Positions 38,925 to 64,000 of a DNA stretch of 64,000 bases are shown in pieces; the stretch's first letter is position 1, and each line of letters opens with the position of its first letter. This stretch comes from Epithemia pelagica. Taxonomy: Eukaryota > Protista > Bacillariophyta. The translations under genes were made by a program, and so were the position numbers. The DNA is taken from NCBI GenBank assembly GCA_946965045.2, contig OX337240.1:2852001-2916000 (forward strand), read 5' to 3'. The notes under the pieces were generated by a model, which worked only from the letters and a program-made list of their open reading frames with translations, searched no databases and had not been told where the DNA came from.

Positions 38925-41361
38925 ATGAGGTCATCATCATCTTCTTCTCCTTCTTCTTCTCCACTCCTGTTGCGTCTTTCCTGGACGTGGTTCTGGTCTT
39001 GTTTGGTGACAGCCAGTGTTTTGCCCTATTTCATGGCTCGATCCCTCTTTGTGGTGCGGCAGCAGCACTCGTCGTCGTCATGGAGTCCCCCGACGACGAC
39101 AACCACCACCACAACCACAACCAGCACTTTTCCTCCTTCCTCCAAGCAAACTGTGGAAGTTGTGTACGTCAATGATGATGCTCCTCCAGCAACCGCCGTG
39201 GTACAACGCCAGTTTCCAGCGCCTCGATTGCATCCGGGCAAGGTTCCTCCCTTGGCACGCTACACGGGTCAATGCTTTGACAATCCCTTGGTGGATGCCG
39301 AATCAACCAACCCTGAATCGACCACTCCTACTAGTACTGCTGCTACGACGACGACCACCACCACGTGGAGTCAACATCGTGTCGATGTGCACCTGGACCT
39401 GGAGGACTCCTCAAGCCATCACAACGTGACCACCACCGAAGACCATGACTACGATCACCAGGGGGGTCCGTACGAACCAGCTGGCCAGCACTTGTTGATG
39501 GATATTCAACACGTTTCGCCCCGCTTCTTGTTGGATACGCACCAGCTCGTCCAGGCCATGTTGCAGATTGTCACCCAATCCAAATTAACCTTGTTGTCCT
39601 ATCATTGTCATGATTTGCAGGCACCCCTGGGCGTGTCTTGTGTCGGTGTCTTGCTGGAATCGCACGTGTCCTTACACACCTGGCCTCATGCCGGGGTCAT
39701 TGCCTTGGGTACGTATTCAATATATCTTTCGCCGAGTGATGGTCACAGTATCCTTCTCCTCCTCCTGTGAGGACGGCAGGGGCCGTGTGTGTGTGTTTGT
39801 ATGTGGTGGTCCCCAAGGATTCTAACGTCGTTTTTTGGTGTTGTCGTGTTTTCCTCTGCTGTGGCTGTTGGTGTCGTCGGTGTTGTGGGTTTCGTTTTGG
39901 TTCTCCTCTTTCTACCTATACCATTGTATAGATTTGTTTACCTGTGGGTCCCAAAGTTTGCTGCAGCTCTTGCCCTTGTTGACCGACTTGTTTGCCATTC
40001 GGGACGACAGTGTCGCACAGGCACTACTCCCATACATGACGTGGTCGCACAAGAAACGTGGCTATCGCAATTATTTTGACAGCGACGGCTCCTTGCGGTA
40101 CACCAACCACAGTAACGATAACGACAATGAGTACAACCACAACCACACGACCACCCATACTGCCGTCGTCGAACCAACAAGCACCACGAAAAACCAAGTG
40201 GAACAATACGTCTTGGGATGGACGGGCCGAGACTCTCACGCCAAGACCCCGCAACTCGTGTTGGAAACGCCAAACAAGAATACCGTGGAAGTCTATGGAA
40301 CGACGCAGTCCAAGACTTTGTTTTGGAATGGTGTCTTGCACTCCACAGTTCATGGATTGTCCGCCTATTATGAATCCCTCGTCCATCCAGTCATGACCAT
40401 ACTGATCGAAGAAGCACAACAAGAACAACACGAACCCCGGTTGCGAGTGGCCATTGTCGGAGGAGGCACGGGTGCGACGCTCCGTCACGTGTTGCAGTAC
40501 GACGCATCGGTTGTGGAATCGTGTACCTTGATCGAACCGGATGCCGAATTCCTTGACCTGGCTCGCGTCCAGTTGCCCGAATGGAATGAGTGTCGGGAGT
40601 TGCTCATGGTGAATGCCAATCAGAACCACAACACTACGACTCGCCCCAATGGCTATCCGTCGTGTTTGGATCATCCACGCGCTCGAGTGGTGCCGCAAGA
40701 TGCCCTGTCGTGGTTCCGGGAGCGATACCCTGAAAACGGAACCCGCGAGGAGGAGAACCAAAAGTTGAATGTGATTTTTGTGGATGCTCCGACCTGGTCC
40801 ATGAATGAACAGTTGGTGTCGGCCTTGATGTCGGCCTTGACCGATCGAGGTGTCCTGGTCCTTCCCGTCGGCCGTGCCACCGCTTGGTCGTCCTTGCCGA
40901 GAAGTAAAAGAACAAATACTCTCGCGCTCAATGCGGTTCCCGACGAATTCTCCAGGCACGGCATGATTCCCCTGGCGACCTATCACGCGCCGCATCCGGG
41001 ACGACCGGGAGGCCCCAGTGTGCAAGTGCAAATTCTGGGTCGGAGGGACTCCACTCGTCGTATGACGACTACGACGAGTAGTACGTTGGCGGACGAACCC
41101 GCCCGCATGGACTTGCGTCTGGCCAAGACCCGGACCGCCACGGTTTCTTTGTATTCCATGGATGGTGCCACTTGGGCATCCTCGGTACGACAACCACCCT
41201 CCTCGTCCTCTTGTCGTCCAACCGTGAAGGAGGAGGATACGGTACTTGGGGACTGTGTTGGGGATCGCAACGACGACGACGACGACGACGAGTTCTTGTC
41301 GTTGTTGGTGGAACGGTTCGAGGCGGCTCCCATTCAACAAATCCTTCAACGACAACAATAA
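38925..41361 (+). CDS. S-adenosylmethionine decarboxylase - aminopropyltransferase fusion (no SET); exons 38925-39708 and 39932-41361
   Basis: N-terminal hydrophobic anchor; prokaryotic-type AdoMetDC GQHLLMDI...GVLLE/SHVSLHTWP...IAL|DLFTCG across a GT-AG intron; spermidine-synthase-like YYESLVHP, RVAIVGGGTG, IEPD, VIFVDA. Confidence 0.9.
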
Positions 41362-41800
41362 CAATAACGATAACAATAATAACAACGACAAACGGTTGTT
41401 GGAAACGGTGTCTGCCACAAGCGAGACACTTGGTGGGACTACTAGGTAGCTAGCTAGAGACTGGTACAACGACGCCGTTTGGTGCAAAGCGCAGTCATGT
41501 TTTATAGCCAAACGTTTGTTGTGAAGTCTCCTCGTACAATCTCTTTCCTTGGATGGCGGCGTTGTTGGTGTGGTGGTGGGCGGATTATCTAGGAATAGGA
41601 GACAAAGACCCAAAGAAGAAGAAGAAGAAGTTTGGATTTGAATTGTCGTGAGGATTCGCGTCCCACAAAAGCGACTGGAAATGAAGAGGTCGCTTCTTAA
41701 ACGTTTTGGGGTCGCGTTAAGGAAAGAACACCGACCATCTGTTTGTTTCATCCATCCATCACATGGGTGTTCTATTATTGTTTTGTTGGTGTGGTTCTCC

Positions 41801-43885
41801 ATGGTATCCTTCTCTTCCTCCTTGTCCTCGTTTGTTGTTTGTGGGAGGAACCCAGTAAAACAACAACAACCACAACAACCACAACGACAACGACAACGAC
41901 AAGGATCGACCTTTGCTGTGGTCGCACTGGTCATGACAAGTATTATGATGATGATGGCACATTCGTCCAGCCGGTGGTTCCTGCCAACGGCCACTGCCTG
42001 GCAACCAATCCTCACCACCGCCAGAACGACGACGTCTAACATTCGTTCTAGTCGATTCTTGTCGTCGTCACGGTTGCTTCCAATCCGAACCAAAAGAACA
42101 AGAGCAACAACACGAGGAGGCCCATTCGTTTCGCCGACTGCCTTGTTTCAATCTTCTTCTTCTTCTTCCTCCTCGTCCTTTTCTTCCGTGGCTTCTCCTT
42201 CTCCCAATCCTCCTCCTACCAACAACAACAATGACGACGAGTTGGAATTGTTGTCGGGCTACCAACGTCCCGTCTTGCATTGGTATCCGGGTCACATTGC
42301 CAAGGCCGAACGGGAATTGCAAGAAGTCTTTCTCCCAGCTGTTGATGTCGTGGTCGAAGTCCGGGATGCCCGCATTCCCAAGGCCACGGCGCATCCCCTC
42401 GTCAGTGACTGGTGTGCCAGCAAACCCCGCATTGTCGTCTTGACCCATGCCGATTGCATTCCTCAAACGGCCAAGCGCGATTGGCGCAAGGCCTATGACC
42501 AATTTGGAGCTCATGCCATGACGAGCAGTCAAAGCAATACCAAGACCAATAAAAAACAAGTGCAACATCAAGCTCGACAAGCCGCTCACGAACGGGCCAA
42601 ATATACAACGACGAGCAAAAAGTCCAGCCACAAGAATAACAATCCCAACGACGACACTACAGATCCGATTCATTCCGTCGTCTTTGTCAATGCGCAACAG
42701 GGGACCATGATGGTACCCTTGAAAAAGGCCATTGCCCAAGCCGGTCGACATGTTCAAGAACGTCGGCAACGACGCGGCTTGAAACCCCGACCGCTCCGCG
42801 TTGGCTTGTTGGGGTACCCGAATGTTGGCAAATCGGCACTCCTCAATCACTTGCTCGGTCGTCGTCGGGCCAAAACGGCCAATGTGCCGGGCGTGACGCG
42901 ACGATTGCAATGGATCCGGTTACGAACCGATGTCGATGTCAGTGTCCCAGCCGCCTCGCGGACCAATCCGGGCACGACGGTGGGTGGCACGCCCATTTTG
43001 GAATTGCTCGATTCGCCCGGCATTATTCCCTTGCAATTAAAAGAATGTCAATCGGATGCCACCTTATTGGCCGCTTGTCATTTGCTCGGCGAAGCCGCCT
43101 ATGACAATCCCCAAGTCGCCGCCTATTTGATGCAATGGATGTTGCAAGTGCATCGGCACAATTGGCACCATCGACTCGCACCGACGTGGCGACGGGCCTT
43201 TGAAGGACGGTACAAACTCGATCCCTTGTCGCCCAAGGAAATTCAAGAATTGCGACCCCTCAGTGGAATTGGCGGTCCCAACATGTATGAGGACGAGGAC
43301 GACGATAGTACTACGACCAAACCATCCACCAGCTCGTCGTCGCCGCACCATGAATTTGTCCGCACGCACGTGAATGAGGATGGTGTGCCCGTCTACATCT
43401 ATCGTCGCCCTCGCACGGGCGAAGATTTGTTGCACGATGTCGCCGATCGCATTTTCTTTGGCAAGGTGGAAGATGCCGCTCGTCGCATTTTGCACGATTT
43501 TCGCAAGGGCCGTCTCGGCTTGATTTGTTTGCAACGACCGCCTCAACAGGCCAGTGATCCCGGCCAAGATCCCGTCTTGCCCGAATTGAACGACGCACAA
43601 GCGCAACGACGACACGATTCCTACAGTCTGTACGAATGGGAACAACGACAAGAACGAGCCGTTGTGGCTCAAGAAGCGGCAGCCGTCCTGGGATTGGAAT
43701 TGCCACCGGCGGTCGTAGCGCAACAACAACAAGCACAACAACAACAACCAGAGGACCAACACACCGACACACATGTATCCCAGTCCGAGGACCGTTCCAT
43801 CCAGGAGAGCGGCGACAACCAGGACAACCAGGACAACAACAATGACAATGACGATGTGGGACGAGGACTCTTTGATGGATGGTAA
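41801..43885 (+). CDS. RbgA/YlqF-family circularly permuted GTPase, probably plastid-targeted
   Basis: WYPGHIAKAERELQE, VDVVVEVRDARIP, GLLGYPNVGKSALLN (G1), PGVTR (G2), LLDSPG (G3); presequence with ATA-W; start chosen at ATG 41801. Confidence 0.88.
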   Translation: MVSFSSSLSSFVVCGRNPVKQQQPQQPQRQRQRQGSTFAVVALVMTSIMMMMAHSSSRWFLPTATAWQPILTTARTTTSNIRSSRFLSSSRLLPIRTKRTRATTRGGPFVSPTALFQSSSSSSSSSFSSVASPSPNPPPTNNNNDDELELLSGYQRPVLHWYPGHIAKAERELQEVFLPAVDVVVEVRDARIPKATAHPLVSDWCASKPRIVVLTHADCIPQTAKRDWRKAYDQFGAHAMTSSQSNTKTNKKQVQHQARQAAHERAKYTTTSKKSSHKNNNPNDDTTDPIHSVVFVNAQQGTMMVPLKKAIAQAGRHVQERRQRRGLKPRPLRVGLLGYPNVGKSALLNHLLGRRRAKTANVPGVTRRLQWIRLRTDVDVSVPAASRTNPGTTVGGTPILELLDSPGIIPLQLKECQSDATLLAACHLLGEAAYDNPQVAAYLMQWMLQVHRHNWHHRLAPTWRRAFEGRYKLDPLSPKEIQELRPLSGIGGPNMYEDEDDDSTTTKPSTSSSSPHHEFVRTHVNEDGVPVYIYRRPRTGEDLLHDVADRIFFGKVEDAARRILHDFRKGRLGLICLQRPPQQASDPGQDPVLPELNDAQAQRRHDSYSLYEWEQRQERAVVAQEAAAVLGLELPPAVVAQQQQAQQQQPEDQHTDTHVSQSEDRSIQESGDNQDNQDNNNDNDDVGRGLFDGW

Positions 43886-44521
43886 ATCCATTCCATAGTA
43901 AAAAAGACACACAGGAGGAACTAATACCTAGTACTTTGTAGTATAGTATCAGCACTCGTCGATACTACCATTCGCACGCGCGGCAAGAGCCCATTGCGGA
44001 ACGACGGTCCATCCGCACAGCTCTTTGAGTGCCACTAGCTATAGAGTAGGAGTAGCTAGGAGTAAGGAACCTGCTAGCATGGATAGTTTTAGTCTTGTGT
44101 GCGGGGCAGGATTCTTTTGGGTCGCCGATATAGACCCATGACTCCGTCTGACTCGTGATTCCAATGACACCCTGGCGGATGTGTCAGATCGCCCTCAACA
44201 TGTGGACATGACAACCAAACAACAACTAAACAAAAACAACAACCACAACCAATATAGACAAGAACACAAAAGCTCTGTTTCACAAACCAACACTGGACAC
44301 GACCAACGCAGTGTGGGTGTAACAACGCAAGACAAGGCCACAGTCACTGCAACCCTAATCAATAAGAAGAAACACGCAAGATTGCCTCATTCTCATCACC
44401 ACCAGCATCACCACATACGATCATCATCCACATTCTCATCATCCGCAGCAATCGCAGCAGCCGAGAAGGACCAGAATCCTATCATCATAATATCATCCAG
44501 AACAACAACATCAACGACAGT

Positions 44522-45529
44522 ATGACCATGACAACAACTTTTACCCCAAAGAGGACGACTCGACCCATCACCACCCTTGTGTGGTGGTACTGCTTCCTGT
44601 TGTTGCTGGTGGGAGCCAGTTGGTCTCGAACCACCGTCACGAGTGCGACGACAACCACTACAAGCACAACAACACCCAACAGACTCGCCAGAACGGCCTT
44701 TGTCGTTTCCCAACGAACGACGACCCAAAGAAGAAGAACATCACCGACCCACACCCATGGCGTCGTGTTGTTTCAATCCAGCAAGGACGACGACGACAAT
44801 GACTCACTGTCACGACCCCCACCCGTTTCGTCCCTCATTACGCCCCAATCCAGTTCTCGGAGTGCGCAACCACCCCAATCCCAATCATCCTCGCAATCCA
44901 AATTACCCGCCGAATTTGAGTATCAAGAATTGCGCGCCCAAGTCCAAGCCTTGGCACGAGCCGGTTGGTCGACGTTTGATACGGCGCAATCCTTGTCGTC
45001 GGACCGACACGCCGAATTGCAAAGCTATTTGCAAACGATTGTCCAACAACGACCGTCGCCCGTACCCTTGACCAACTTGGAATCGCACTTGCAACATTCC
45101 TCGTGGCGCTTGTCCTACAGTACACCAGCCTTTTGCGCGTCGTCTGGATTGCCCCGCGATGCCACTGTCTCGGTCGAGTTTGGCGGCAACTCGTTGGACG
45201 ACACTGCCACGTATCGATTGGACTTTACCAACAATGCCCTGTTGCAAAACTTGGTTGCCACGTGTACCTGGAGTGTGGGAACGGATCCGACCGCGACGGA
45301 TGCCAATTATGCCGGCGTCGTGACACTCACGTATCAACGCATTGCCACATCGGTGTTGGGATTCCAAAATGTCGGCATTGGCACGTTTGGATTACTGCAG
45401 GGACAGCAAACTTATATTCAAACCGTCTATTGCGATGACGCCTTGTGGATGGAAGTCGGTACCACACCGCAAGGGGACTCCTATACCAATGTCTATACGC
45501 GAGTCGTCGAGGAGGACGACCAATCCTAA
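44522..45529 (+). CDS. Presequence-bearing hypothetical protein, possibly PAP/fibrillin-like
   Basis: Signal peptide plus Thr/Arg-rich transit region; C-terminal beta-rich domain WRLSYST...IQTVYCDD.LWME resembles fibrillin/lipocalin-like folds. Confidence 0.5.
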   Translation: MTMTTTFTPKRTTRPITTLVWWYCFLLLLVGASWSRTTVTSATTTTTSTTTPNRLARTAFVVSQRTTTQRRRTSPTHTHGVVLFQSSKDDDDNDSLSRPPPVSSLITPQSSSRSAQPPQSQSSSQSKLPAEFEYQELRAQVQALARAGWSTFDTAQSLSSDRHAELQSYLQTIVQQRPSPVPLTNLESHLQHSSWRLSYSTPAFCASSGLPRDATVSVEFGGNSLDDTATYRLDFTNNALLQNLVATCTWSVGTDPTATDANYAGVVTLTYQRIATSVLGFQNVGIGTFGLLQGQQTYIQTVYCDDALWMEVGTTPQGDSYTNVYTRVVEEDDQS

Positions 45530-46101
45530 TACAAGAAACGGAATGAGCCGTTGGTTCCTTCGTTTGGAGCATGTGACTGTACTCTAGAATACTAATAATA
45601 CTATCGTGTACGAGAAACTGTGTTTGGTTCCTGCGTGTTTCGTACGAGCACAAGAAGAAGAAGAGTGGCTTGCCTTTCAACAATAATTGTGTGTGCACAC
45701 ACGCGACGACTGGAGTAACTGCACCATTATTTCGAGAGGGTATCCTTCCGACGGAATGGAATGTCCTTCCGATAGTAGTAGTAGAGAGTGTTTCTCTCGA
45801 GTGTTTCGAACTCCGTGGTTGGACAATCTCGAGAGCGACACACACAGACTCAAAACTCTCCCCCGAGACACTCTCCTACACGCAGAGACCGAATGGTCTC
45901 GGCGAGCGCACCTACTGACAGGGTCGTCCTTTTCCATGGCTAAAAACAAACCGGAGAGACAAGGTTGCGATAGGAATGGCGTTGTCGGATTGCAGTAGAT
46001 GGATGCTGTACAACATGGGAATCCTCCGGCTCCATCCGGGGTCCTTGTTCCTTTTCTTCTTGTTCATGTTGTTGTTTTTTCGTTTTCCTATGTGATGTTT
46101 G

Positions 46102-47601
46102 TTACCCACTGGCCACGACACACGATCGTTTGGCCAAAAGATGGCGACGACGACGACGACGACAGGCTCCAGTGTGTTCTACTTGTTGCTCCTGTTGTTG
46201 TTTTGGTGGTGATGGTGGATGTTGTACGAGGAAGTTGGAGCGTCGTCGTCGCGCCACTTCGGTTTCCTGCAGCCAGTGTTCCAGTTCGAGGCGTTGCACG
46301 ACAAAAAGATCAAGTTGAACGACTGACGAATGGTCCTTCTTGGGATTCTTTTGGTGGTTGTTATTCGCAGTGTTGCACGAATCATCCTCCGCACTCTCCT
46401 CCTCCTCCGGGTCCGAATCGTCCGTTTCCCAACTGCTATAATCGTGATAGGTCGAGGAGTACGATTGCGCATCATCCTCATCCTCATTGCCATTCTCCTC
46501 CACGTCATTTATCTTTGGCTTGTGGCAAGTGTCCTGAAACACATCATCCTCATCTTCTTCTTCTTCATCTTGCAGCGAGGAGAAACGAGGACTCGTACAC
46601 GTAGCAGACTCGACGACGACTGGCGGCTCTATCCAATCCTCGTTCGTCGTCGTAGTAGTAGTAGTATTGGGTGCCGCACGTAGGACTGGATCGCCTCGTG
46701 CGCAATGAGGCTCTAGTTTGTGGCTGCTACTGCTGCGGTTCGGACCACCACTGGTCGTGTCATGCTGCGACTTGTGGTGCTGGTGGTTGGTTGGCATTCT
46801 TTGGGGCTTTTGGTGTTTCTCGTGGCTTGGCAACCACCGTCTCGTGCGTCGTTGAGTAGCTCTTGTTGTTGTTGTTGTTGCTGTTCTTCTTCTTCTTGTT
46901 TGGGGAGACACTGGATCCTGCCCCATGAGAGGAGATGAAGCAGCCGTACCATTGGAATGAATGGGAACAAAAGAAGAACTATAACTACATTGGTCTTGTT
47001 GTTGTTCCGGAACTTGTGGCGGTGGTGAAAGGGTGTCCAACGACGCTACACTTGTGACATCCTGTGGATGTTGTTGTTGTTGGAGGGCTTGTTGTTGTTG
47101 TTGTTGGTGGTGGTTGTTGTTGGTGGTGTATCGCTGATTCTTTTTCTTCTTCTTGTTCTTCTCGTTGGATAATGGTTGGCCAAGGGCTCTTTTAATTTGT
47201 GGGAGCAAACGTCGTCCTCGTTGGTTTTGGGCGGTGGTGGTTCTTGGTACAAAAGACTTGTTGTTCCTCCTCGTTTCTGTTTGGCTGGGTACTGTTGTGG
47301 TTGTGGTTGTCCTGGTGGGCGGTCGGTTTCCTTGTCTTCTTCTTCTTCTTTTGGAAGTGGTGATTGTCACGCCAACGGCTCCTCCTTGTACTGCTGCTGG
47401 TGGCGGTGGCTTGCGAAAGCGTCTCATGAGAGGGTGACGCCGAGAAGAAGGAAGAGGAGGAGTGGGTCCACTCGTGGACGAGGAGGAGGCAACGATCGTA
47501 CGAGGGTGGTCCACTGTTGTTGTTGTTGTTGTTGGGTCCTCGGTTTTGTAAGAGGATGAATGCTGGAGAATTGTGTCGTGGTCCAAAGGAAGAAACGACA
47601 A
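46102..47601 (-). CDS. Low-complexity hypothetical protein (499 aa)
   Basis: 1.5-kb ORF with basic, Gln/Thr-rich and acidic tracts; no domain. Confidence 0.45.
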   Translation of the reverse strand: MSFLPLDHDTILQHSSSYKTEDPTTTTTTVDHPRTIVASSSSTSGPTPPLPSSRRHPLMRRFRKPPPPAAVQGGAVGVTITTSKRRRRRQGNRPPTRTTTTTTVPSQTETRRNNKSFVPRTTTAQNQRGRRLLPQIKRALGQPLSNEKNKKKKKNQRYTTNNNHHQQQQQQALQQQQHPQDVTSVASLDTLSPPPQVPEQQQDQCSYSSSFVPIHSNGTAASSPLMGQDPVSPQTRRRRTATTTTTRATQRRTRRWLPSHEKHQKPQRMPTNHQHHKSQHDTTSGGPNRSSSSHKLEPHCARGDPVLRAAPNTTTTTTTNEDWIEPPVVVESATCTSPRFSSLQDEEEEDEDDVFQDTCHKPKINDVEENGNEDEDDAQSYSSTYHDYSSWETDDSDPEEEESAEDDSCNTANNNHQKNPKKDHSSVVQLDLFVVQRLELEHWLQETEVARRRRSNFLVQHPPSPPKQQQEQQVEHTGACRRRRRRHLLAKRSCVVASG

Positions 47602-48743
47602 ACGTGTGAACGAAAGAGCAAATCAGTCAGTGGATCTGTTTGGATTGAATATCTAGGAAAGACGTGTCGATTGTTCTGGTTCTGTATGTGGATTGTGGAT
47701 GGTTTTTGTGGGATAATTCTTGTGGGATTGTGATGGTGTCAAGGTTGGAGAGTGTTGCTAATTTTTTTTTCTGTGTGTGGATTTGTCGAAACATGAACGG
47801 CTCTGAGAATTTCTCATTGTGTGATGTCTTCTTTCTCTTCTCTCGGCCGCCAGCCCAGTCTCTGCGAACGGCTGACGCTTCGCCTGGGTGGTGCTCTTAC
47901 GCCCAAGCGGAAGTTGAGTCATGCTATTTCGTGACTCGCCTGACTCACCCCCAATTGATTGAGTGACCTGGGTTCACATTCACGAAACTGTACGACTCAC
48001 CAGCCGCTAAGGCGTAGTAGTACTCTCTACAACGATCCTGGCCAGCGCAGATGCAGCTGGTCTGCCGGAAAGCCGGTCGGGCGGCAGTACACTACAAACA
48101 TTCGTTCGTTCTTTTCTCTACATAACTAGTGTACGATGGTAACCAGTCAAACCGACCAGTCAGTGAGGGTAAACAGTGAACGGAAATGCGAACATGGACA
48201 GACGACGCACAGACAGATCGTCCTTCTGTTCTGTGCGACTCGCTTTCAGGCGGGATCCAGACTGGACTATACCTCCTCAACAGTCTTGGGTGGCACAGTC
48301 GCAGTCGGGGTTGGAGGTTGGATCCATCGTGCCCTGGCCCTTTATATTATATATTCAGCAGAGAGAGGATGTGACTCTGGAATCGATGGAGCTTCACACA
48401 CAATGGTTTCGTATTCGCACGTGCGAATGATGGAGTGTAGACAATCCGAACAAACATCTCCTACTAGGTAGGTGCCAAACGCCACAAGAGTGGCGGTGGG
48501 TTTCCTGTCATTCTACTATGTTTGGAACAGTTTAACACACGTTTTGATTGGCTTCTGGCATGCATCATGTCCTTGTTGGAATATTATTTTAACACATCTT
48601 TTGATTGGCTTGCGCATCTTTCGAACATTTTAAACTCACCTTTTGATTGGCTTGTCGATCTTGACCCTTTTTTCTTGGTCCGTTCGTGGCACAATTTTGC
48701 GGCTGTTCGACCAGATCGAAGAATATTAGATTCCACTACCACC

Positions 48744-52674: not shown

Positions 52675-55492
52675 TTAATGGTGACTCTCGTATTTATGAA
52701 TGATTCCAGTTCCTTGTTGCAAGCATTGTGCCTTGAGGTCGGCAATGTATGCTTGCCAGTTATCTTCCCAGTATTCGAGATAATTTCCCAACACTTCTTG
52801 ACCTGCATGCACGTTCTCCAACAATGCTTCCTTGCCTTGGGAGATCCAGTGACTACGATCTATGATGGGATTGAAAAATGCCAATTCCTCCTCTAGATCC
52901 AAGAGTTCCTGTGGCATTTCCAACGGATCCGCGGTGAGTTCGGTCACATTGGTGCGTTCGCCCACCACATAGGTACCATTGCATCCATGATTTAAAAAGG
53001 TTGCCACACCGGCATCCACTTGAAACGATGACCTTCCATAAAAGTCACTCGAAAACCCATACCCAAACAAGTAGGCCGACCACAACTCAAAATTGCGCCG
53101 TGCAGGACTCTGAATCATGTCGTCCAGGAGAAGCTCAACGGTATCAGGCAATGCGTCCATATGCCATACACTCTGGTCAATTGCCAAGTAAGATCCTTCG
53201 TCAAAGTCCTGTGTGAAAAACAAACCTCGACCTCCGTTGGGAATGAGACTTGGCTTGAGTTCCAGAGCAGATCCCGGAACATTCGGAATTCTGGGATCGT
53301 ACCCTTGTACCTCTTCACACAATGGCGATGCACGGGGATGAGTTAAACAATAAAATCTGGAATCAATGCTTGACGGATACTGCGCCGACGCCCATGTCGC
53401 ACCATCAAAGTACGAAAAGGGAAAGTCCTTGGACCGAGTTGCCATGGCGCTCTTGGCTTGTTGTAAATTCACCATGGCCGGCTCGTAAAAGTAATTTTTG
53501 AGCGTATCACGGCTTTTGTGAACAATTCGGAATTCCCATGGAGCCAGAAATTGCCCATGTGTCTCTTGATAGGACTTCATGGAAACCATGCCGTGCGATT
53601 CCAAAATGTGCTCAAATTGGGCCATCGTGGGAGCCTTGGCAACATGAATCTTGTTCGAGTCTTGATCACTCATGTAGGGAGCACAGCCCACTTGCACAAC
53701 CATGACACCACGATCCGTCAAGGCGTGAACCAAAGAAGATACGAACGTCTCGTCCTTGTACAAGATATCAGAAAACTCCACTGACGAAGAAGGATCGCTG
53801 AAAAAAAGACAAGAAGGAATCCATTCAATTCATAATTTGATGATGAGAACAGAGAAACATCGATTGCAATTGCGAATAAAAGAATCCAAAGGAACAACTT
53901 ACAGAGCATCCATAATAATCACATCAAACTTTTCCGATTCGTCAATATCCTGTTCTTTGTGATAGCGCCCGATAAACCACAAAATAGCATCCTCTGGAAA
54001 CACACGAGCGCGTGGATGGTCAAAGCATGAGCTATATCCATCCGTCTTGTTGTTGTTGGCGGGCGCCGCATCGACCAAATCACGGCAGTCATTCCATTCG
54101 GGCAAGTGGACTCGGGCCAGGTCCATGAATTCGGCATCAATATCAATCATGGTGCAAGATTCGACCGATTTGTGTTTGAGTACTTCACGGAGCGTGGTTC
54201 CTTCTCCCCCACCAATAATGGCCACGCGCAATGAGCAGGACGATGAGTCGGAAGCCGCTCCTTCGACCATGGTCAAGGCCGGATGGACCAAGGCTTCATG
54301 GTAGGCTTCCAGTCCATTCAAGGTGGATTGAAGAACGCCATCCAAAAAGAGACGTTTGTTGGAAGAAGCCGTTCCATATATTTCTACTTGCTGAAACTTG
54401 GTTGAGGTTTCCAATTGCGGTGTCTTGGCTTGGCTGTCTACTCCTGTCGAACCCAACAAGAATCGTTCGAGTTCCAATTCGGTCGAATGCTTTCTATCAT
54501 CATCATCATCCTCTTCCTGGTGGTTGGTACTGTTGCGGAGTTGACCGTCGGCTCCAAAATAATCGCGATAGCCACGTTTCTTGTGAGACCATGTCAGAAC
54601 TGGTTCGGGTGCGTTTGGTACATTGTCATTGCGAATGGCAAAGAGTTCCTTCAAAAGAGGCAGGAGGGGCAGTAAACTTTGCGATCCACACGTAAACAAA
54701 TCTAAACAATCAACAGCAACAAGACTGTTAGTACCATGGTCCTTCCAAAACACAGATAAGACCCACTCTATAAAATGTATACGTACCCAAGGCAATGACC
54801 CCTGTGCTTGGCCAGGTATGCAACGAGACGTGCGATTCCAGCAAGACACCGACACACGAAACCCCCATGGGCGCTTGCAAATCGTGGCAATGATAGGACA
54901 GCAAGGTCAATTTGGATGGTGTGACAATCTGCAACATGGCTTGAACGAGCTGTTACGTATCCAACAAAAAGCGTGGTGATACGTGTTGAATGTCAATCAA
55001 CAAGTGCTGGCCGGCAGGTTCATACGGACCACCCTTGTGAAAGTAGTCATGTTCTTCTTCCTCTTCTGGAGTAGTGGTGACGTTGTGGCTCGAGGAGTCC
55101 TCCAGGTCGAGATGAACGTCCACACAATGTCGACTCCAACTCCACGTGGTGGTGGTGGTGGTGGTGGTGGTGGTGGATGTAGACTCGCTTCCTTCTTTGA
55201 CAGGGAGGAGGGGATTGTCAAGGCATTGGCCCGTGTACCGTGCCGATGGAGGAATCTTGCCCGGATGCAATCGAGGGGCCGGAAATAAGTTTTTGGTGGT
55301 GGAAGATGCGACCACGTGATTGTTCTCCTCCTGTGACACAACCTCTACTCCATCTTGCTGCTGGATTTTTGACTTGCTCCTGTTGTTGTTGGAATAATTG
55401 CCCGTGCCCAGAAAAGAGGGGCCCCAATACTTCAACTGTTGGGCTTGATAAAAGGGAAGCACAACGGCCGTCACCTTGGAAAGATTCACCAA
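52675..55492 (-). pseudogene. AdoMetDC - aminopropyltransferase - SET fusion with in-frame TAA (54953-54955); exons about 55492-54787, 54701-53903, 53797-52675
   Basis: GQHLLIDI, VLLESHVSLHTWP, DLFTCG; YHEALVHP, RVAIIGGGEG, IDID, VIIMDA; SET-like GGRGLFF, TFLNHGCN, AGQEVLGNY. First intron at the same position as in the 38.9-kb paralogue; no in-frame ATG found upstream of 55492. Confidence 0.85.
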
Positions 55493-56295: not shown

Positions 56296-57345
56296 ATGTC
56301 GGTTCCTACAGCTGGTATCATGCCGTTGGAGATGGACCGGAAACACAAGAAGAAGATGATGAGAAAAAATAAAGTTACGACGGAAGACGATGGAGGGTCT
56401 CTTGTTCTTCCGACACGACAAGAATTGTATCGGACCAAGGTCTTTCATCGCATCACTAGCACCACTCGTAGCAACTCGTCGCTTCTCGAGGCGTGTATTC
56501 GACACCATTTGTGGCAGGGAGAATTGGCCGTCCGTCGTGGAGGGGCCCTGATCATTCCAAAACAACAACCACAAAAGAAGAAAAAGAAAAAGACGACGAG
56601 TCACTACAGCTCAAAACCACCCAGCTACATGCCATCCTCTCCCTCGCACCATATAATCCAACATCGAGAAGAAGAAGAAGTATTTTGGGATGCTCCACAA
56701 GAACAAGAAGTAGACGATGCGGTTCAGAATCCTACAAATGTTCTGTCGTGGAACAGGAGGCGGTGTCTGATGGAATGGACGACTCATGGCATTGGCCTTG
56801 TGTCACTCGTGGGGTATTTTATCGTTACCAACGCCGTCCAGTGATTGCTGGATCGTCTCTTGACACCAACGACTCGACCACCACCGTCCATAGCCGCCCA
56901 AAATTTCAACCATATGACAGCCGCCTCGATAACCAACGACAACGTACCGGTTCGGGTATCGACCGGACTCCAACAAGCAATATGTGTGATACTAGGAGCA
57001 CTCGTGTTGCGTGGCATGACCACCAGTCTGTATTGGTTTTCCTCTCCCCGTGTCTACGATTGTGTCAAATTCCATTTGCACAATCAACGACGGCAACAAG
57101 AACCGAGTGGATGGTATTCGCTCATGGACCGGTGGTATCCTCGACAATGTGTTCCACAGGTGGAAATGGTCGTTTTTCTGGTGGCATGTGTCTTGTTGGC
57201 CCATACCGTCGATGAGTGGAATGAGGTTTTGTTTCAAGGACTGTTTGGTTCCGCCGCAACCAATCATGTTTTGACGAATTTGACCTGCAATGTCGTGACA
57301 ATGGTGTTGGCCTTGGTTGCCTTGTGTCATGGGGGAGGATTTTAA
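56296..57345 (+). pseudogene. Hypothetical 4-TM membrane protein with in-frame TGA (56842-56844)
   Basis: ORFs 56296..56844 and 56845..57345 are contiguous in one frame; hydrophobic helices; paralogue at 51 kb. Confidence 0.6.
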
Positions 57346-57511: not shown

Positions 57512-59811
57512 TCAGTCTTCGCTGTCCCACTTTTGCTTGTTGTATCCAAGCATACCTGCGGCTTCTTTTTGTTCTGGATCCAAATCATCCCAAGCAAATT
57601 CCGTTGATGGTGGCACCTCGTTAGCGTTCCACATTTTCTTGCTGTATCCCAGGAGCGAGGCGCCGGAGCGCACTGTGCAGAACAAGACAACGAAAAATGA
57701 TAAGCATTCAAGGACTATTTGTCTCCTCCAACAAACAATCAAGTCATCTTACCGTGTTCGGGGAGTTCGTCCCAGTCAAAGTCGTCGTATGCTTCTTCAT
57801 GAATAGTGGAAGACAGGGGTTCCGCTCCTTCTGCCAATCCTGCTCCTTTGTTCGTTTCTTTTATCACATTGGCGGAAAGTTGTTCCCAATCCGATCGCAT
57901 CAACATGGATGCAATGAGAGATCCCGAACAGGCGTAGCCGACCACAACAGAGCCCACCTTGGTTTGAAGATCAAAGTTGAGCACCAAGGCAAATATGGAG
58001 GCCAAAGGAATTGTCACTCCCCAGCTCCCAATTAATCCCAAGGCTGTTGCGAGTGCGTAGCGACCTTGCGCTCCCAAAATCGACCAGCACATGGAGCCAA
58101 ACATTAATGCTATGTTCCCCACACCCACCAAAGGAAATAGATCAGTCAATATAGTTTGCAAGGTTTCATCCGTGGTGAAAAAGCGTGTTAGGATATCTTT
58201 CATGGCAATAATTGGAAGGGAAAAGATAAGGGAAAAGAGGGTTCCGAGGTAGAGGGATTTGTTCCCCATGCTTCGGGCCCGGTAGGGTTGGCCGGAACCC
58301 ATCATTTTGCCAACCTTGACTTCAGCCGCATCGGCAATGGCCAAGGAGATTTCTTCAATGGCCTCCCAGAACCATCCCAACAATCCCCAGGCCGAGACTT
58401 AGGCAGGACCCATAAATCCAGCCAACACGGTCAACACTTCCCATTCTCCCGTGGTCATGACAAATCCAATCGAGATGGGAAGCGATGTCTTGAAAAAGAT
58501 GCGGAGGGCTTGTGTGTTGGAGGGAGCAAAGTTGCCAATCATTCCACCACAATAATCCTTGAGCCAACCCTTGTCCACTAAAATGGCCACAAAAATCACG
58601 GTCGACACCACGTCCACTGCCAAACCCAAGAGGGCTATATCTTGTAGACCGGGATTGCTATATTTGGCATAGAGAAAGGTGGAGACAAATGTCACAATCC
58701 CTTCCGAGATTGTGAAACACGCCGTAAACACTTCATGTTCAACAACTTCCAGAATATGGTCCAATCCCGTCCGATATACTTTAAAGAGATAGGAAACAAA
58801 CTCCACTTGAGCGTAGCTCAGGCCAATGTCGGCCACTTCTTGTTCAAAGCCAAACAAGAAGATAATGTCTTCCAAAAAGAACCATAAAATGACCCCCGTG
58901 GGCAACAGGAGGGCTTGGTAAAAGACAACTCCAATTTGTACATATTGACCCGCGAGGTAATGTTTCTGCGCCCCCGCGGCATGGCTGCACAGCGTAAACA
59001 AGGACGTCAAGGCCCCTTGCATAAACATGGTGGCCAAGGAAAGGACAGTGTCTACAATAAATAACGCCGAGAGCTCTTCGGTTCCCACCAAACGACCAAT
59101 AATGGCCACTTCCATCAACTGTAAGACCTGAACGACAAAGGTATGAATGGTAAAGGGCAAGGCGAGCTTGACAATACCTCGTGTATCGCCGTCGCACTTG
59201 TAAAACTTGTATTGCTTCCAGGAAGATACCGTAAGGGTACGTCGATCAACACAGGAGGAGGATGCCTTACAGTGGTTGTAGTCCACTGTTTCTGGTTCGT
59301 CAGCTGGGCCACCTTTGGATGAAACCGAAGAGAAACTGTGGTCCGTCGTCGGCGGCCTGTTGTGGTCGGCCGTTGACCTGCTCGAGAACGACATATTGTC
59401 GTTGTCGTCATCATCATCTCCATCATGATTCATGTGCAGAAGGGCTTGGACGACTTGTCCCCCTCCTTGAATTCTTCGGACATCACGCGCTTTAGGATGC
59501 CACAACTCCTTGGTGGCCACATATTCTGTCATGGCCTCTTCCAAGTAGGCCATACCGGTAAAATTCCCCTTGGACGAATTGGAAACGGATCCATCGTCCA
59601 CGTGCTTCTTCTTAGTGTTTTGGTGGCGTAGCAGACTTTTCACCGAGCGATTGCTATTGCTGGTGGTTACCGATCCTTCGTCATGGTCTTGTACATGCTC
59701 CTCCAGTGTCCTCCATCTGGCCGTATTACCTACCAATCCATCCTCCTCCTCCAAGCCACTGGATTGTCGCAAAAAGACATTTTCATGTTCTTGATGGTCC
59801 TCCTCCTCCAC
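57512..59811 (-). pseudogene. MATE-family transporter with in-frame TAA (58399-58401) and C-terminal W..L....A..LGY....W repeats; intron 57673-57752
   Basis: KLALPFT...VAIIGRLVGTEELSA, GAQKHYLAG, PISIGFVMTTGEWEVLTVLAGFMGPA*VSAW, ILGAQGRY; frames continuous through the stop. Confidence 0.85.
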
Positions 59812-60156
59812 ACAAAGCTACACGAAATTACACCCTCAAAGCCACCCCCGCTGGGGGGTAGTTCTTTGGGTTCTGTTTGTACACTACTCCCCGAAGTGGT
59901 GAACACGAAGTGTCAGGTGTTGTTACATATGACAGAATCCGAACCGCTTGGAAAGAACCAATCAAGAAAGATCCTACTATGACGTCGTCTGACGTGACCA
60001 AATAACCGTCTCGTCGTATGGCATTGACGAATCGCTGACAAATGAAAGAAAGTCATGGAAGCCTCGATTTACCTCCGCCCAACTTTTAGTAGTGATCAGA
60101 CACGACGAGAAATGTTCAGAATTGGTTGAAAAAGTGGAACATGGAGCTGAACGATG

Positions 60157-60207
60157 ACCTACCTACCTATCTACCTATCTACCTATCTACCTACCTAAAT
60201 ACCTACC
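60157..60207 (+). repeat. Imperfect (CTAC/CTAT)n microsatellite
   Basis: CCTACCTACCTATCTACCTATCTACCTATCTACCTACC run. Confidence 0.8.
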
Positions 60208-60608
60208 ACCCGTTCTCGATGATAACAATACAAGTAATGACAACGACCCCCTTGTACCAGTGATGACGACGCGTACGAGCCCGAGCCCGAGCAACAATAG
60301 GACAAGCCAACCTCGCCAAACACTGCAACAGGTGAAAAGGCAAGCAACAAGGGAAAGGGAGGAAAGGGGCGCGATAAGCCTATTGTAAATGCTTTGTCAT
60401 CAAAGGTGAGGACGGCAAAACTTGGAGCTACCCTCCGTCATCCGAGAATTCAAGCGCCATGACGACAATTCTTTATCATTTCCATTACCATTACATGTTT
60501 AATCATCTACATGGTTATTTCATCATTCTATTGTGTTGTTGTTACGGGTATCCCGGCTCGTCACCATTGACTCCATTTCGTCTATTTGGGCAGTGATTCG
60601 TCAAGTCA

Positions 60609-60648
60609 GTGACGCGTCACGTCACGAAGAGGGTCCGTGACGTGACGC
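60609..60648. promoter_or_regulatory. TGACG-rich inverted repeat (13-bp stem, 9-nt spacer); candidate bZIP site cluster
   Basis: GCGTCACGTCACG-AAGAGGGTC-CGTGACGTGACGC; related sequence at 55954-55989. Confidence 0.45.
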
Positions 60649-60715
60649 AGTAGCAACCTTGCACATCATCTATTAGAGCCCACCTACAAAAGACGCTTGA
60701 AAAGACGCGATCTTA

Positions 60716-61164
60716 GGCCGTTCCTCGAGCACGACAAAACCAATTTGAGAACGTGACATCTTGGAGAATTTTCACATTGTCCATCCTCGAGCAAAACCAA
60801 AACCAAAACAAGAGCCCGCGCCTAGGTCCCCAACACTCCCCAAAAGTACTCTGTGGAATTGAATAAGAATACTATTCGAAAGTTGGAATACTTCATTAGG
60901 GATTGGGGGACCGTTGGAGTCGAACGCGCGCCGCTGAAGTCCAGAACGCGCGCTGGAAGTTTCTGTATCCCATATGTACACTAGAATAAAGATAACACAA
61001 TCCCTAATGCTATTTCAGGATTTGTCGGCCGACAAATCCTGAGCTTTGGATTTGTCGGAATGGAGGGCCGACAAAAACTGTGCAGTGAAATATGACGTCA
61101 AGATGATGTAAATTGATGACGTGTCACGTTTTCAGATTGGTTTTGTCGTGCTCGAGGAACAGCC
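60716..61164. mobile_element. PIF/Harbinger (Tourist-like) MITE, 449 bp
   Basis: About 42-bp TIRs GGC(C/T)GTTCCTCGAGCACGACAAAACCAAT(T/C)TGA(G/A)AACGTGACA; TTA duplication at 60713-15 and 61165-67. Confidence 0.85.
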
Positions 61165-61216
61165 TTAGGCATGTGCTGGAATCTGGAAAACCGAACCATG
61201 AGATCATGAGAGGAGT

Positions 61217-62117
61217 GAAATGAGGGACTTTCATGACAGACGTTCGGAGAAACTTTCAAAAATTAGACTGACATTCGGACAGACCATCCAGTGACCGTCG
61301 ATGTCTCCATTACTCTTCCATATTGACTCTTCTTAAAGAAAATGACCCTAGTTGTCTTGTCAGTGCCACTTCAGCTGCATTCCCAAGTTTAACCCTATCC
61401 CTAAAAACGAAAGTTTCCCCGAATGTCTCTCATTTCGCTATAAAGGCCTGAAAAAGTCAAGTGAAAGACTTTCGGATAGCTTTTTGAGAGACGTTCGGAG
61501 TTTTAGGATAGCTTTTTGAGAGACTTTCGGGAAAACTTTTGATCCCCGTACACTACTATATAATGAACCCAACCAGCAACGAATTGTGGGCACAATACTA
61601 CTTACGAGCTCCACCGGACTGACATTGTTACAGCAGTAGCCCGTGCTTTTCAAGGCCTCCACTGTTTTCTCTATAGTGATTCTATTTTCGTAGGAAGACC
61701 ACTACGGTCATTTTGCACTGCATAACACCACAATGGCACACTCAAGCCGGTGTGCACCTCCAACGAAAGGTCCTAGCACTCCTCCGACCATCAAGGAGTC
61801 TTCAGAATCAAGTGTACCGTGATGGGTGAAAAGGGCGGCATTGAGTTGGCGAGTTTGATCGACCTACAAGAACATTTGGAAAGACTTCCACTTTGGGGGT
61901 GGAAGGTCGCGACGAGATGATCGTCATTGGAGATGAATTATGATGGAACGAACGAAGATTGCAGGGAGGGACGACAATGGATGCTTTGGTATGGATGGAT
62001 GAGGCGTAGGAGAGCAACGGCAAGGACACACGGCAATCAACTGGAGGATTTCGAAGCAACCAAAAAGCTATTTATCCGAAAGTCCTTCTATATGTTCCTC
62101 TAAAAGTCCCTCATTTC
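61217..62117. mobile_element. Putative non-autonomous TIR element with subterminal repeats
   Basis: 15-bp perfect inverted repeat GAAATGAGGGACTTT (61217-31 / 62103-17); GACTTTCGGATAGCTTTTT-type repeats at 61467-61530 and inverted at 62062-84; no TSD identified. Confidence 0.4.
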
Positions 62118-62210
62118 CCTATTCCCTGAGATCATTCACCATCGACCACAACCAAAAAGAGCAAACAGCGTCAGCTACAACCCTTGGATACAACAAAGCC
62201 GTATCGCGTC

Positions 62211-64000
62211 ATGAGCAATAAGAACAAGAATGGCCGCTTACCAGCAGACAGGAATACGACAACGACGAACAAGAGATGTGTCGTCCACAACAACAGCAGT
62301 GGTGGTTTCACTGCAATTCGTCTGACTTGGAAACGGATCTTTTGGCATTTCGCGCTAGCAACGGTCGTGCCATTCGCCCTTGCGATTGTGTTGCGCCGAG
62401 AAACAAGTCTTTTTGCTTCTCCGAATGACAATACTGCTACCCACCCAAGCTTTGTTGGACGGGCGAAACAAGAAAAGGTTTGTCGACGACAGGTGGGAAG
62501 GAACAGTCTCGATAATACACGGCAAAGGAAAAACAAGACGCAGTCTTCTTCTTCCTTGGAAGTCTATCACGAAACACTGGTTCATCCGGCCTTGCTGTCG
62601 CACAAGTTTCCTCAGCAGGTGGCCCTGGTGGTTGCCAGTCGGATCAGCAGTGACATGTCGGTGGTCCATCATGTCTTGAAACACACGACCGTCCAACACT
62701 GTCATGTGCTGCACTTGGTTCACCATGAGGAGAATGAGAAGGACGCTTCGTCCTTGACGTGGAAGGACGATCCACGAGTGCATTGGACGACGGTAACGAA
62801 TCTAGAGGCCGCTCGGACATGGTTCCTCGATCGCTGGGGTGCACCGAATGACGATGCAGAAGAAGAAGAAGAGGAAACAATAAAGAAAAAACTGGATGTC
62901 ATTCTTTTGGATACCCTACTGTAAGTACATGAGCAGGACTGAGAGAATGTTTTGCAGCAGTGCCATGCATTCTGCTGGTTCTTTCACAAGAACTGCTCAC
63001 GAAAGCATTTCTCTGCCGCACCTTTTTCTTGCAGAGACATGGATACACCATATAACTTGTTCTCTCATCCCATGTTACGTGACCAATCCTTTCTGGATGC
63101 TATGGCTTTGGCACTCTCTCCGACGGGCGTGTTGGTAGCCCATGTTGGAGCAGTTACAGCCGCGACACCACCATCAATAATAACAACAGGCGGTGTGGAT
63201 TCTTATCCCCTCGAACGCTTTACGAGTATCTGGACCGATTCCGAGGCTACAAGAATGGTAGCCTATTCCGAATCGATTATCCTTGGTGGTCACCGCTCGG
63301 ATCACCAAGTCCACGAATTTCGTATCGTCTTTATGGATAATGATGCCATGCTGGCCAAATGGTATGCCGAGGCCTCCTCCATTCAGGTCGAACTGACCAA
63401 GAGGATTTCAAGTTCTGGTGGTGGACCACCAGCTGCACAACCACTGCGGTTTCTAGACGGAGCCACTCAACAAATCTATCATTTCCCCAGCCGCATGCAA
63501 GAAAACCATTATTGTCAAACGACGACACAAAAATCACCGCATTGTACCGTCGTTCGAGGGTTTGACCCCGATGTGCCCAATTTACCCGTTTCAGCTCTGG
63601 AATTTGGTACCAGTCGCGTGGCCAATGCCGGAAGGGGCGTCTTTTTCAAACAAGCCTTTGCCAAGGGAACCTACTTTACCATCGAAGAGGCAGTCCATAC
63701 TATGTTTGTCAAGCCCATGACGACTAAAATTATTCAAGATTTATGGAAATTGATACCAGCCAAGTGGAAAGCCTTGGGCAATTACTTGGATGGCTACGGA
63801 TTCATGGACGATTTTTGGGGTCTGGAAGCATATATGGTCGATCCAGGCATTACCACCTTTGCCAATCATGGATGCAATGGGACCAACAATATTGGATTAG
63901 CTACAAACTTTACCGAACTTACGGCCACTGTAGAGGAAATTACCACCTTGCTTCTGCCGTTCCAGTACCTCTTTGATCCTGCCGGGGATCGGTCCCACTT
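62211..64000 (+). CDS. Membrane-anchored degenerate aminopropyltransferase - SET fusion (3' end beyond the window); exons 62211-62920 and 63035-end
   Basis: TM segment IFWHFALATVVPFALAIVL; YHETLVHPALL, LDVILLDT. Intron 62921-63034 is at the same site as intron 2 of the 53-kb paralogue. Exon 2 is open to the edge with LRFLDGAT, GFDPDVPN, NAGRGVFF, TTFANHGCNG. Confidence 0.85.

Follow-up and report, generated by a model that had tools for sequence, protein, structure and literature searches.

Fusions of AdoMetDC with an aminopropyltransferase (APT) and, in some members, a SET domain have been described in diatoms and were proposed by Michael in 2011 (FEBS Lett 585:2627, as relayed in PMC3820600, PMC12029483 and PMC12803844) to synthesize long-chain polyamines. 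In Nitzschia inconspicua, 32 APT fusion proteins were reported, and polyamine synthesis and N-methylation by the fusion family were listed in December 2025 as needing study (both PMC12803844). The genes described here belong to this diatom AdoMetDC-aminopropyltransferase(-SET) family, as predicted. They have the same domain order, a bacterial-type AdoMetDC (PF02675), then the APT (PF01564), then a C-terminal SET domain, and the same family-wide pattern of individually dead domains. Homologues were found in Epithemia, Entomoneis, Stauroneis and Thalassiosira rotula.

Among solved structures, Thermus thermophilus SpeE (PDB 1UIR, 3ANX; E 2.6e-20) is the closest match to the APT domain. SpeE and the APT share identical GGGEGATLREVLKH and DID motifs. 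SpeE is a stand-alone soluble bacterial enzyme, whereas the domain here is part of an anchored fusion protein and is broken up by acidic inserts. Compared with SpeE, the cofactor-binding motifs are lost in the paralogues G1 and G3. Thermus SpeE accepts several substrates and participates in long-polyamine synthesis, and aminopropyltransferases are oligomeric enzymes. The C-terminal 200 residues have the same fold as NSD1, MLL1 and SETD8 (Foldseek probability 1.00, TM by target 0.34-0.53) and share the GxG, NH and catalytic Tyr motifs of lysine methyltransferases, but the identity is only 10-18% and the pre-SET and post-SET zinc modules are absent here. Instead of a histone, the substrate is presumed to be a polyamine or a lysine modified by polyamine. 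MATE transporters carry organic cations; the two MatE repeats (PF01554) of this class are also found at the locus, but in an interrupted frame that lacks the N-terminal region.

The window, a stretch of 64,000 nucleotides of Epithemia pelagica DNA, was predicted to hold three APT-fusion paralogues and a MATE gene. The four genes lie where they had been placed, and the AdoMet_dc, Spermine_synth, SET and MatE homologies were borne out by Pfam or, for SET, by family hits and Foldseek. The physical clustering also held, although the number of paralogues did not: six are found within 48 kb, namely G1, G2 and G3 in the window and G2', GX and G3' just beyond its end. The features of the window are as follows.

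38925-41361, plus strand: G1, 737 amino acids, exons 38925-39708 and 39932-41361 (Pfam and gene model)
39709-39931, plus strand: the single intron of G1, GT-AG
41648-50828, no strand given: unrelated genes between G1 and G2 (an MMR_HSR1 GTPase, two unnamed open reading frames and a DEAD/ResIII helicase)
52675 to about 55440, minus strand: G2, AdoMetDC-APT-SET homologue
54702-54786 and 53798-53902, minus strand: G2 introns of 85 and 105 bases
54953-54955, minus strand: in-frame TAA of G2, within the AdoMetDC domain and upstream of the ES site
56296-57345, plus strand: gene U, divergent from G2 and duplicated along with it
57512-59811, minus strand: MATE gene, two MatE repeats, intron 57673-57752, divergent from G3
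58399-58401, minus strand: in-frame TAA at codon 471 of the MATE gene (GAA in the contig 13 paralogue)
60712-62126, no strand given: repeat-derived block between the MATE gene and G3
62211-64000, continuing to 64232, plus strand: G3, 635 amino acids, with 232 bases beyond the window end
62921-63034, plus strand: the single intron of G3

Joined spliced models were the input for alignment, dN/dS and the tree, and single exons were taken for the database and fold searches. The motif table compared 32 family members. One sequencing run, X4, was not labelled as RNA but was taken as RNA-like because its contigs skip canonical introns and its intergenic depth falls to about 1; its depths were not used to rank genes. 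X4 gave transcript evidence for G2, U and the MATE gene.

The self-processing Glu-Ser site LLESHVSLHTWP and the DLFTCG motif of AdoMetDC are present in G1, G2, G2' and GX. The APT motifs LDGxxQ, GGGEG..RE, (E/D)ID and DxxDP are found in G2, G2' and GX and not in G1, G3 or G3'. The SET motifs are found in G2, G2', G3 and G3'; G1 has no SET domain, and GX has lost the core of it. G1 was confirmed as an AdoMetDC-APT gene, with Pfam scores of 59.4 bits for AdoMet_dc and 25.6 bits for Spermine_synth and no SET domain in the Pfam scan or the gene model. Its protein begins with a hydrophobic anchor followed by an AdoMetDC domain with an intact ES processing site. The APT motifs of G1 are degenerate (WNGVLH, GGGTG, RHVLQY and IEPD in the motif table and in the PDB alignment to Thermus SpeE), and the DALDPSS loop is deleted. 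Almost all of the 32 family members keep GGGEG..REVLKH, IEID and DALDPSS, but G1 and the G3 group do not. The gap of approximately 11 kb between G1 and G2 is occupied by the unrelated genes.

The description of G3 as a degenerate APT-SET gene also stood. G3 has an anchor and no AdoMetDC, and its pseudo-aminopropyltransferase is without the N-terminal hairpin, the GGGEG loop and the ribose-binding acidic residue; the SET motifs GRG, NHGCNG and NY are intact. G3' is similar, with no AdoMetDC, no APT motifs and a SET domain. All four G3-subfamily members, among them solitary genes on contigs 5 and 13, share the pseudo-APT state. When the second exon of G3 was run in a word-based protein search, the matches were three clusters of an ENA assembly, from an organism that is the same or nearly identical, and two short metagenome proteins from JGI; no named species was among them. 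In GX, the AdoMetDC and APT motifs are kept. Dead AdoMetDC domains were seen in the motif table for E. clementina 015381 and Entomoneis.

G2 has Pfam matches to AdoMet_dc (43.6 bits) and Spermine_synth (58.9 bits). Its last exon scored 12.8 bits (E 0.17) against Pfam SET, below the Pfam cut-off, and a PDB sequence search with this exon gave no match. The SET assignment of the G2 C-terminal domain was therefore made at the level of family and fold. Pfam SET matches were found in 25 of its 39 aligned homologues, and an AF2 model of the domain (pLDDT 88) had the SET domains of NSD1, MLL1 and SETD8 as its top Foldseek matches.

Inverted local duplications of 88-91% nucleotide identity join the array copies, and the paralogues are interspersed with repeats that include a Copia element. 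The tree places G1, G2, G2' and GX in one clade (SH-aLRT 98), sister to just one gene of Epithemia clementina, ACA910_015381 (support 80), indicating that the expansion is lineage-specific. G3 and G3' cluster with the contig 5 and contig 13 copies (support 100). The intron after GVIAL is common to G1, G2, G2' and GX, and the one after MDAL to G2, G2', GX and G3; the intron positions, predicted to be shared, are therefore shared pairwise but not across all of the genes, and G1 lacks the MDAL intron. Gene U was copied with G2. Its copy U' adjoins G2' beyond the window, and in a self-BLAST the stretch 56428-57099 matched 66527-65793 at 79%. U has no Pfam match; it is covered by X4 reads, and transcript contigs were seen. 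Copies of the block at 60712-62126 (94.7-99%) lie close to GX and G3', and the final 128 bases of the block are found on many contigs. The repeat-derived nature of this block argues against a simple bidirectional promoter shared by the MATE gene and G3.

The locus is thus likely to be an array of the known diatom fusion family that arose by local duplication within this lineage, as opposed to a conserved pathway cluster of several functions. A single ancestral gene with three domains, which has one orthologue in E. clementina, would have multiplied in place to give G1, GX, G2 and G2', and a second subfamily, combining a pseudo-APT with SET, would have given G3 and G3'. The copies would then have lost parts: G1 the SET domain and key APT motifs, GX the SET core, and G2 its 5' end, with a nonsense codon gained. 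As read from the sequences, the "complementary" domain sets of the paralogues are secondary losses. By homology, the intact members may be membrane-anchored enzymes in which a pyruvoyl AdoMetDC would make decarboxylated SAM in situ. The APT domain, which most resembles the broad-specificity Thermus SpeE, would add aminopropyl units repeatedly, and the SET domain would N-methylate the product according to the proposal of Michael (2011).

The domain set predicted for G2 is present, but the gene is not intact. It is truncated at the 5' end; the start codon and half of the anchor are gone, there is no in-frame ATG upstream, and the AdoMetDC domain is interrupted by the TAA at 54953-54955. In the alignment, this codon is CAC in G1 and CAA in G2'. 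The possibility was considered that the TAA is an assembly error. This was rejected: it is identical in both haplotigs of a second assembly, and contigs from four runs agree without a differing letter. One haplotig carries an extra 2-base deletion upstream in G2. An alternative genetic code was also rejected, by inference from the paralogue codons, because the TAA codons of both G2 and the MATE gene are one base from sense codons (CAA in G2', GAA in the contig 13 MATE gene).

G2 is transcribed and spliced, as the X4 contigs skip 85 and 105 bases, the intron lengths specific to this gene. It has 13-38 lineage-specific amino acid changes compared with 4-9 in G2', or 2-4 times more. The dN/dS of G2 versus G2' is 0.24, a low value suggesting that G2 was constrained for most of its history and that the nonsense codon is recent or tolerated. 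G2 is probably a decaying duplicate of G2', which is outside the window and is the sole member of the array with all three domains intact. A long open frame starting at the internal ATG 54937 is retained, and judging from the reading frame, G2 could still yield an APT-SET protein. It is possible, if doubtful, that G2 is still working in this way, as a soluble APT-SET enzyme without the anchor and the AdoMetDC beta chain. Both introns are spliced out of the transcript, the region 3' of the stop has a dN/dS versus G2' of 0.09-0.28, and the gene keeps its APT and SET motifs. However, a leader of approximately 900 bases with several upstream out-of-frame AUGs precedes the internal ATG, and the amino acid substitution rate of G2 is elevated.

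The MATE gene lies between G2 and G3 and is divergent from G3, as predicted, but it is not intact either. Its MatE repeats score 63.7 and 44.9 bits in Pfam. It is a duplicate, truncated at the 5' end, of an intact 1133-codon gene on contig 13 at 2.328 Mb, from which it differs by the loss of about 230 N-terminal codons and to which it is 86% identical in nucleotides and 83% in protein. No uninterrupted frame spans both six-helix halves. The TAA at codon 471 is present in the window and in haplotig ctg1347l; haplotig ctg1362l has GAA at this codon but a change of TAT to TAA at codon 346 (window position 58774), so that both alleles are interrupted. A micro-intron that would excise the stop was considered and rejected, the homology with the paralogue being gapless through the codon. 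The dN/dS of the MATE gene versus the contig 13 paralogue is 0.24-0.25, and this low value indicates constraint for most of its history, with nonsense codons that are recent or tolerated. The gene is transcribed and correctly spliced in X4. Since each haplotype carries a different nonsense mutation, the MATE gene is most likely a transcribed pseudogene that arrived in the array by chance. A protein search with it found only distant diatom homologues, of 36% identity or less, and none of the papers searched connected MATE transporters with diatom long-chain polyamines; this MATE clade is not known to be linked to polyamines.

The original prediction had read the locus as a subfunctionalised cluster for elongation, methylation and export, in which the paralogues would split elongation and methylation and the MATE transporter would export long-chain polyamines or load the silica deposition vesicle. 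The genes are adjacent, MATEs carry organic cations, and G2, U and the MATE gene all have X4 transcript contigs. With 24 MATE loci in a genome of 60.5 Mb, the naive chance of a MATE gene inside the 48-kb array is about 2%; this figure is post hoc, as a transporter of any class would have drawn notice. Such a cluster is nevertheless highly improbable. Nonsense codons interrupt two of the four components in the window, including both MATE alleles, and the predicted export component derives from an unlinked gene and is truncated. No MATE copy accompanies G2', GX and G3', the duplicated half of the array; the contig 13 MATE paralogue has no linked APT gene, and no MATE gene lies within 100 kb of the about 20 other APT-fusion loci of this genome, in which the pair in the window is unique.

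The other diatoms gave the same picture. No pairing of MATE and APT genes was found within 10 kb on each side of five homologue loci from other diatoms. Among them, two E. clementina family members had neither a MATE gene nor a paralogue within 10 kb, although the absence of MATE there is weak evidence because these loci have no annotated neighbours within 10 kb. An intronless AdoMetDC-APT-SET gene from diatom metagenome contigs likewise had neither within 10 kb, and two diatom MATE homologues had no APT-family gene within 10 kb as judged by Pfam labels only. The basis for synteny is thin, the only named relative being distant (57% identity) and 10 kb per side being compared. Neither the related genomes nor the paralogous loci compared showed the conserved linkage expected of a metabolic gene cluster, in which non-homologous genes of one pathway are linked and co-regulated. 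Conserved synteny across diatoms was not seen, and the outcome, local duplication beside an unrelated MATE neighbour, is the one that had been named in advance as contrary to the prediction. Because the MATE gene is a partial and broken copy, the locus offers no evidence for a pathway cluster of synthesis, methylation and export.

A division of labour that leaves out the MATE gene was also considered. The surviving domain sets would be kept by selection and would set chain length and methylation pattern, with G1 acting as AdoMetDC only, GX as AdoMetDC and APT, G3 and G3' as SET with the pseudo-APT as a polyamine-binding module, and G2' in all three roles; the paralogues would possibly form hetero-oligomers on one membrane. 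The reading frames and N-terminal anchors of G1, GX, G3/G3' and G2' are intact, their pairwise dN/dS values are below 1 (0.25-0.58), the pseudo-APT is conserved throughout the G3 subfamily, and aminopropyltransferases are oligomeric. However, dispersed family members and other species show the same mosaic of dead domains, indicating that clustering is not needed for the mosaic, and the G3-type genes on contigs 5 and 13 stand alone. A division of labour is therefore considered unlikely. Still more speculative, and rather improbable, is an extension of the same reading in which the array is an assembly line of anchored paralogues with complementary active sites that sets the species-specific chain length and methylation of silica polyamines. 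G1 would supply decarboxylated SAM, GX would carry out elongation, G3 and G3' would methylate while the dead APT holds the polyamine, G2' would do all three, and copy number would tune the pattern.

With the locus read as a duplicated array, what is new here is the six-copy local arrangement, with graded domain losses and one copy in decay; there is no difference in kind. The proposed enzymes for diatom long-chain polyamines have remained candidates since 2011, and the locus adds no new kind of system. Where a duplication zone is young and rich in repeats, the adjacency of genes lends little weight to a shared function. If the assembly line were true, local copy-number change would be the way in which diatoms tune their polyamine pattern. 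Moreover, the array is a compact natural series for tests of domain roles, in which the intact G2' stands beside relatives that are each missing a different active domain.

The count of three aminopropyltransferase (APT) fusion genes in the original prediction was right for G1, G2 and G3 but too low for the locus. The window lies at 2,852,001-2,916,000 of contig 16 in a genome of 60.5 Mb and 23 contigs, which is that of a diatom by its composition, introns and homologues; 38 kb past the window end was also read, numbered onward from the window as "ext" coordinates. A whole-genome search and self-comparison found three extra paralogues, G2', GX and G3', beyond the window end.

Features of the array and its neighbours
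38925-41361, + strand: G1; Pfam AdoMet_dc (AdoMetDC) 59.4 bits, Spermine_synth (APT) 25.6 bits
52675 to about 55440, - strand: G2; Pfam Spermine_synth 58.9 bits, AdoMet_dc 43.6 bits
54702-54786 and 53798-53902, - strand: G2 introns, both supported by contigs of X4, an RNA-like sequencing run
54953-54955, - strand: in-frame TAA of G2; CAC in G1, CAA in G2'
56296-57345, divergent from G2: U, an unnamed gene with no Pfam match
57512-59811, - strand: MATE transporter gene; two Pfam MatE repeats, 63.7 and 44.9 bits
57673-57752, - strand: MATE intron, spliced in X4
58399-58401, - strand: in-frame TAA of MATE, codon 471; GAA in the contig 13 paralogue
62211 onward, + strand: G3; YHETLVHPAL motif, no GGGEG loop, SET intact
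ext 65793-66900, adjoining G2': U', a copy of U
ext 67570-70550, + strand: G2'; 920 aa, 88% identity to G2, orientation inverted relative to G2
ext 78639-81369, + strand: GX; 845 aa
ext 86796-84749, - strand: G3'; 644 aa, 91% identity to G3, orientation inverted relative to G3

Pfam upheld the AdoMet_dc and Spermine_synth domains of G1 and G2 and the MatE pair. The last exon of G2 itself scored only 12.8 bits against Pfam SET, under the cut-off, and the SET domain proposed for G2 was confirmed through its homologues and by structure. A full HMMER search returned 638 representative clusters homologous to this exon; Pfam SET was matched by 25 of 39 aligned homologues, and full-length homologues of G2 had AdoMet_dc, Spermine_synth and SET all above the cut-off. 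When the corresponding G2' exon was modeled with AlphaFold (pLDDT 88, pTM 0.84), the best Foldseek matches of its C-terminal half were the SET domains of NSD1, MLL1 and SETD8, and its first ~140 residues matched SpeE.

A maximum-likelihood tree with 32 family members placed G1, G2, G2' and GX in a single clade (SH-aLRT 98), whose sister was a lone gene, ACA910_015381, of Epithemia clementina, the source of the closest named homologues (support 80). G3 and G3' clustered with copies that stand alone on contigs 5 and 13 (support 100), and E. clementina 015384 was placed with a contig 2 copy, apart from the array. These groupings indicate that the array consists of lineage-specific local duplicates of a predicted three-domain ancestor, together with two members of another subfamily. 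A Copia element separates G2' from GX on the window's haplotype, and repeat blocks sit upstream of both G3 and G3'. Also upstream of both is a ~128-base element (window 62000-62127), probably a transposon end, of which copies with 90-100% identity lie on 12 or more contigs.

About 20 more APT-fusion loci are scattered across the rest of the genome, which agrees with the 32 APT fusion proteins reported in Nitzschia inconspicua (PMC12803844). Family members on contigs 7, 9 and 3 (for example C7:1946062-1947242, C9:655757-656740 and C3:3506767-3507847) have the reverse domain order, APT and then a weak AdoMet_dc, an alternative arrangement already noted for the fusion family; some lie within open frames of 1400-1700 codons. 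On contig 16, which holds the window, a stand-alone full-length Spermine_synth gene occurs in three tandem copies 250 kb upstream (2598852-2624544; 147-149 bits each, spacing about 11-14 kb). Two short fragments 112 kb downstream of the array (3028428-3034179), with 38-45% identity to the mid-part of the G2 last exon, are probably relics of additional copies.

Domain states were taken from a motif table over the family and PDB alignments. The APT motifs LDGxxQ, GGGEG-ATLREVLKH, (E/D)ID and DALDPSS are kept by nearly all family members, including G2, G2' and GX. The G1 APT is altered (WNGVLH, GGGTG, RHVLQY, IEPD), and its DP loop and SET are missing. The SET core of GX is gone, without GRG and NHGCNG. 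AdoMetDC is missing and APT gutted in G3 and G3', so that the degenerate APT-SET make-up expected of G3 held. Different domains do survive in the different genes, but the motif table indicates that these supposedly complementary sets are secondary losses in young duplicates. A comparable mosaic was found in unlinked family members and in other species; AdoMetDC sites are dead, for example, in E. clementina 015381 and Entomoneis. The 'GVIAL' intron is common to G1, G2, G2' and GX, and the 'MDAL' intron to G2, G2', GX, G3 and G3'; the former is absent from G3 and the latter from G1, therefore the shared intron positions hold for G1/G2 and G2/G3 but not across all three genes.

In run X4, canonical introns are skipped and depth between genes drops to about 1; its contigs indicated that G2 and MATE are transcribed and spliced. 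The skips of 85 and 105 bases are unique to G2, because the corresponding G2' introns are 111 and 107. By its reading frame, G2 appears to be a damaged gene. There is no in-frame ATG from the upstream stop to the TAA, and G2 retains only half of the hydrophobic anchor seen in G2'. Contigs from four runs agree on the TAA, and so do the two haplotigs in a second assembly, one of them with a 2-base deletion upstream of it. Lineage-specific amino-acid changes number 13-38 in G2 versus 4-9 in G2'. However, full decay is opposed by the low pairwise dN/dS between G2 and G2' (0.24; dS 0.315), still lower downstream of the stop, and by an open frame starting at ATG 54937, which leave room for a predicted truncated APT-SET product.

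The MATE paralogue on contig 13 (2.328 Mb, 86% identical) has an uninterrupted 1133-codon frame. The homology is ungapped across the TAA codon, and the window gene lacks an equivalent of ~230 codons at the N-terminal end of the paralogue, a stretch with a hydrophobic helix. Haplotig ctg1347l is the same as the window at MATE, and ctg1362l (ENA ERZ21939226) has GAA at codon 471 and TAT>TAA at codon 346 (equivalent to window 58774). The two haplotigs are compound-null, with nonsense codons differing by allele, a pattern typical of a gene that has become dispensable. The decay seems to be recent, because each half of MATE shows a dN/dS of 0.24-0.25 relative to the paralogue. The tryptophan/aspartate-rich C-terminal tail (window 57512-57670; …DDLDPEQKEAAGMLGYNKQKWDSED) is kept in the paralogue. 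G2 and MATE, with U between them, are each 5'-truncated, with one single-base TAA and a dS of about 0.25-0.3 to the nearest paralogue; the region at 52.5-60 kb has the look of a group of incomplete gene copies in joint decay. Self-comparison showed that U was copied jointly with G2, and RNA-like contigs cover it. Its 208-base skip (56808>57017) is probably an indel polymorphism and not an intron, because it was seen in all four runs.

Physical clustering of the APT-fusion genes was borne out, but a cluster for polyamine synthesis, methylation and export was unsupported: MATE carries nonsense codons on both alleles and, among the 24 MATE loci and about 20 APT-fusion loci in the genome, the window's pair is the single one less than 100 kb apart. 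The family member closest to the intact parent MATE is 870 kb away, and self-comparison found no MATE copy in the duplicated half of the array. The anticipated synteny across diatoms was not seen either, as comparisons with distant relatives, reaching 10 kb on each side, found neither MATE nor a paralogue beside two E. clementina family members or beside an AdoMetDC-APT-SET gene without introns from diatom contigs of metagenomic origin. Judged from Pfam labels only, the genes around two diatom MATE homologues included no APT or AdoMetDC. Gene order matched in the second assembly, whose organism is identical or nearly so and which is hence not independent. A literature search found no paper tying MATE to diatom long-chain polyamines.

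The diatom AdoMetDC-APT-SET fusion family was reportedly described by Michael (2011). The array genes are members of it, an assignment that proved correct given their domain set and their homologues with AdoMet_dc, Spermine_synth and SET. Catalytic motifs are intact in G2', in GX (AdoMetDC, APT) and in G3/G3' (SET), and N-terminal hydrophobic anchors are present in G1, G2', GX, G3 and G3'. In a PDB search the APT domain best resembled the Thermus enzyme (1UIR/3ANX, E 2.6e-20). From what is known of the family, intact members would self-cleave at Glu-Ser to give pyruvoyl AdoMetDC, which would make decarboxylated SAM beside the Thermus-like APT; the APT would add aminopropyl units repeatedly and SET would methylate the product. 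This chemistry has so far been demonstrated for no fusion-family member (PMC12803844, PMC12029483). Relative to the known diatom fusion family, novelty lies in the local six-copy array, its graded domain losses and the pair of decaying genes, which are new details of a known system and not a new kind.
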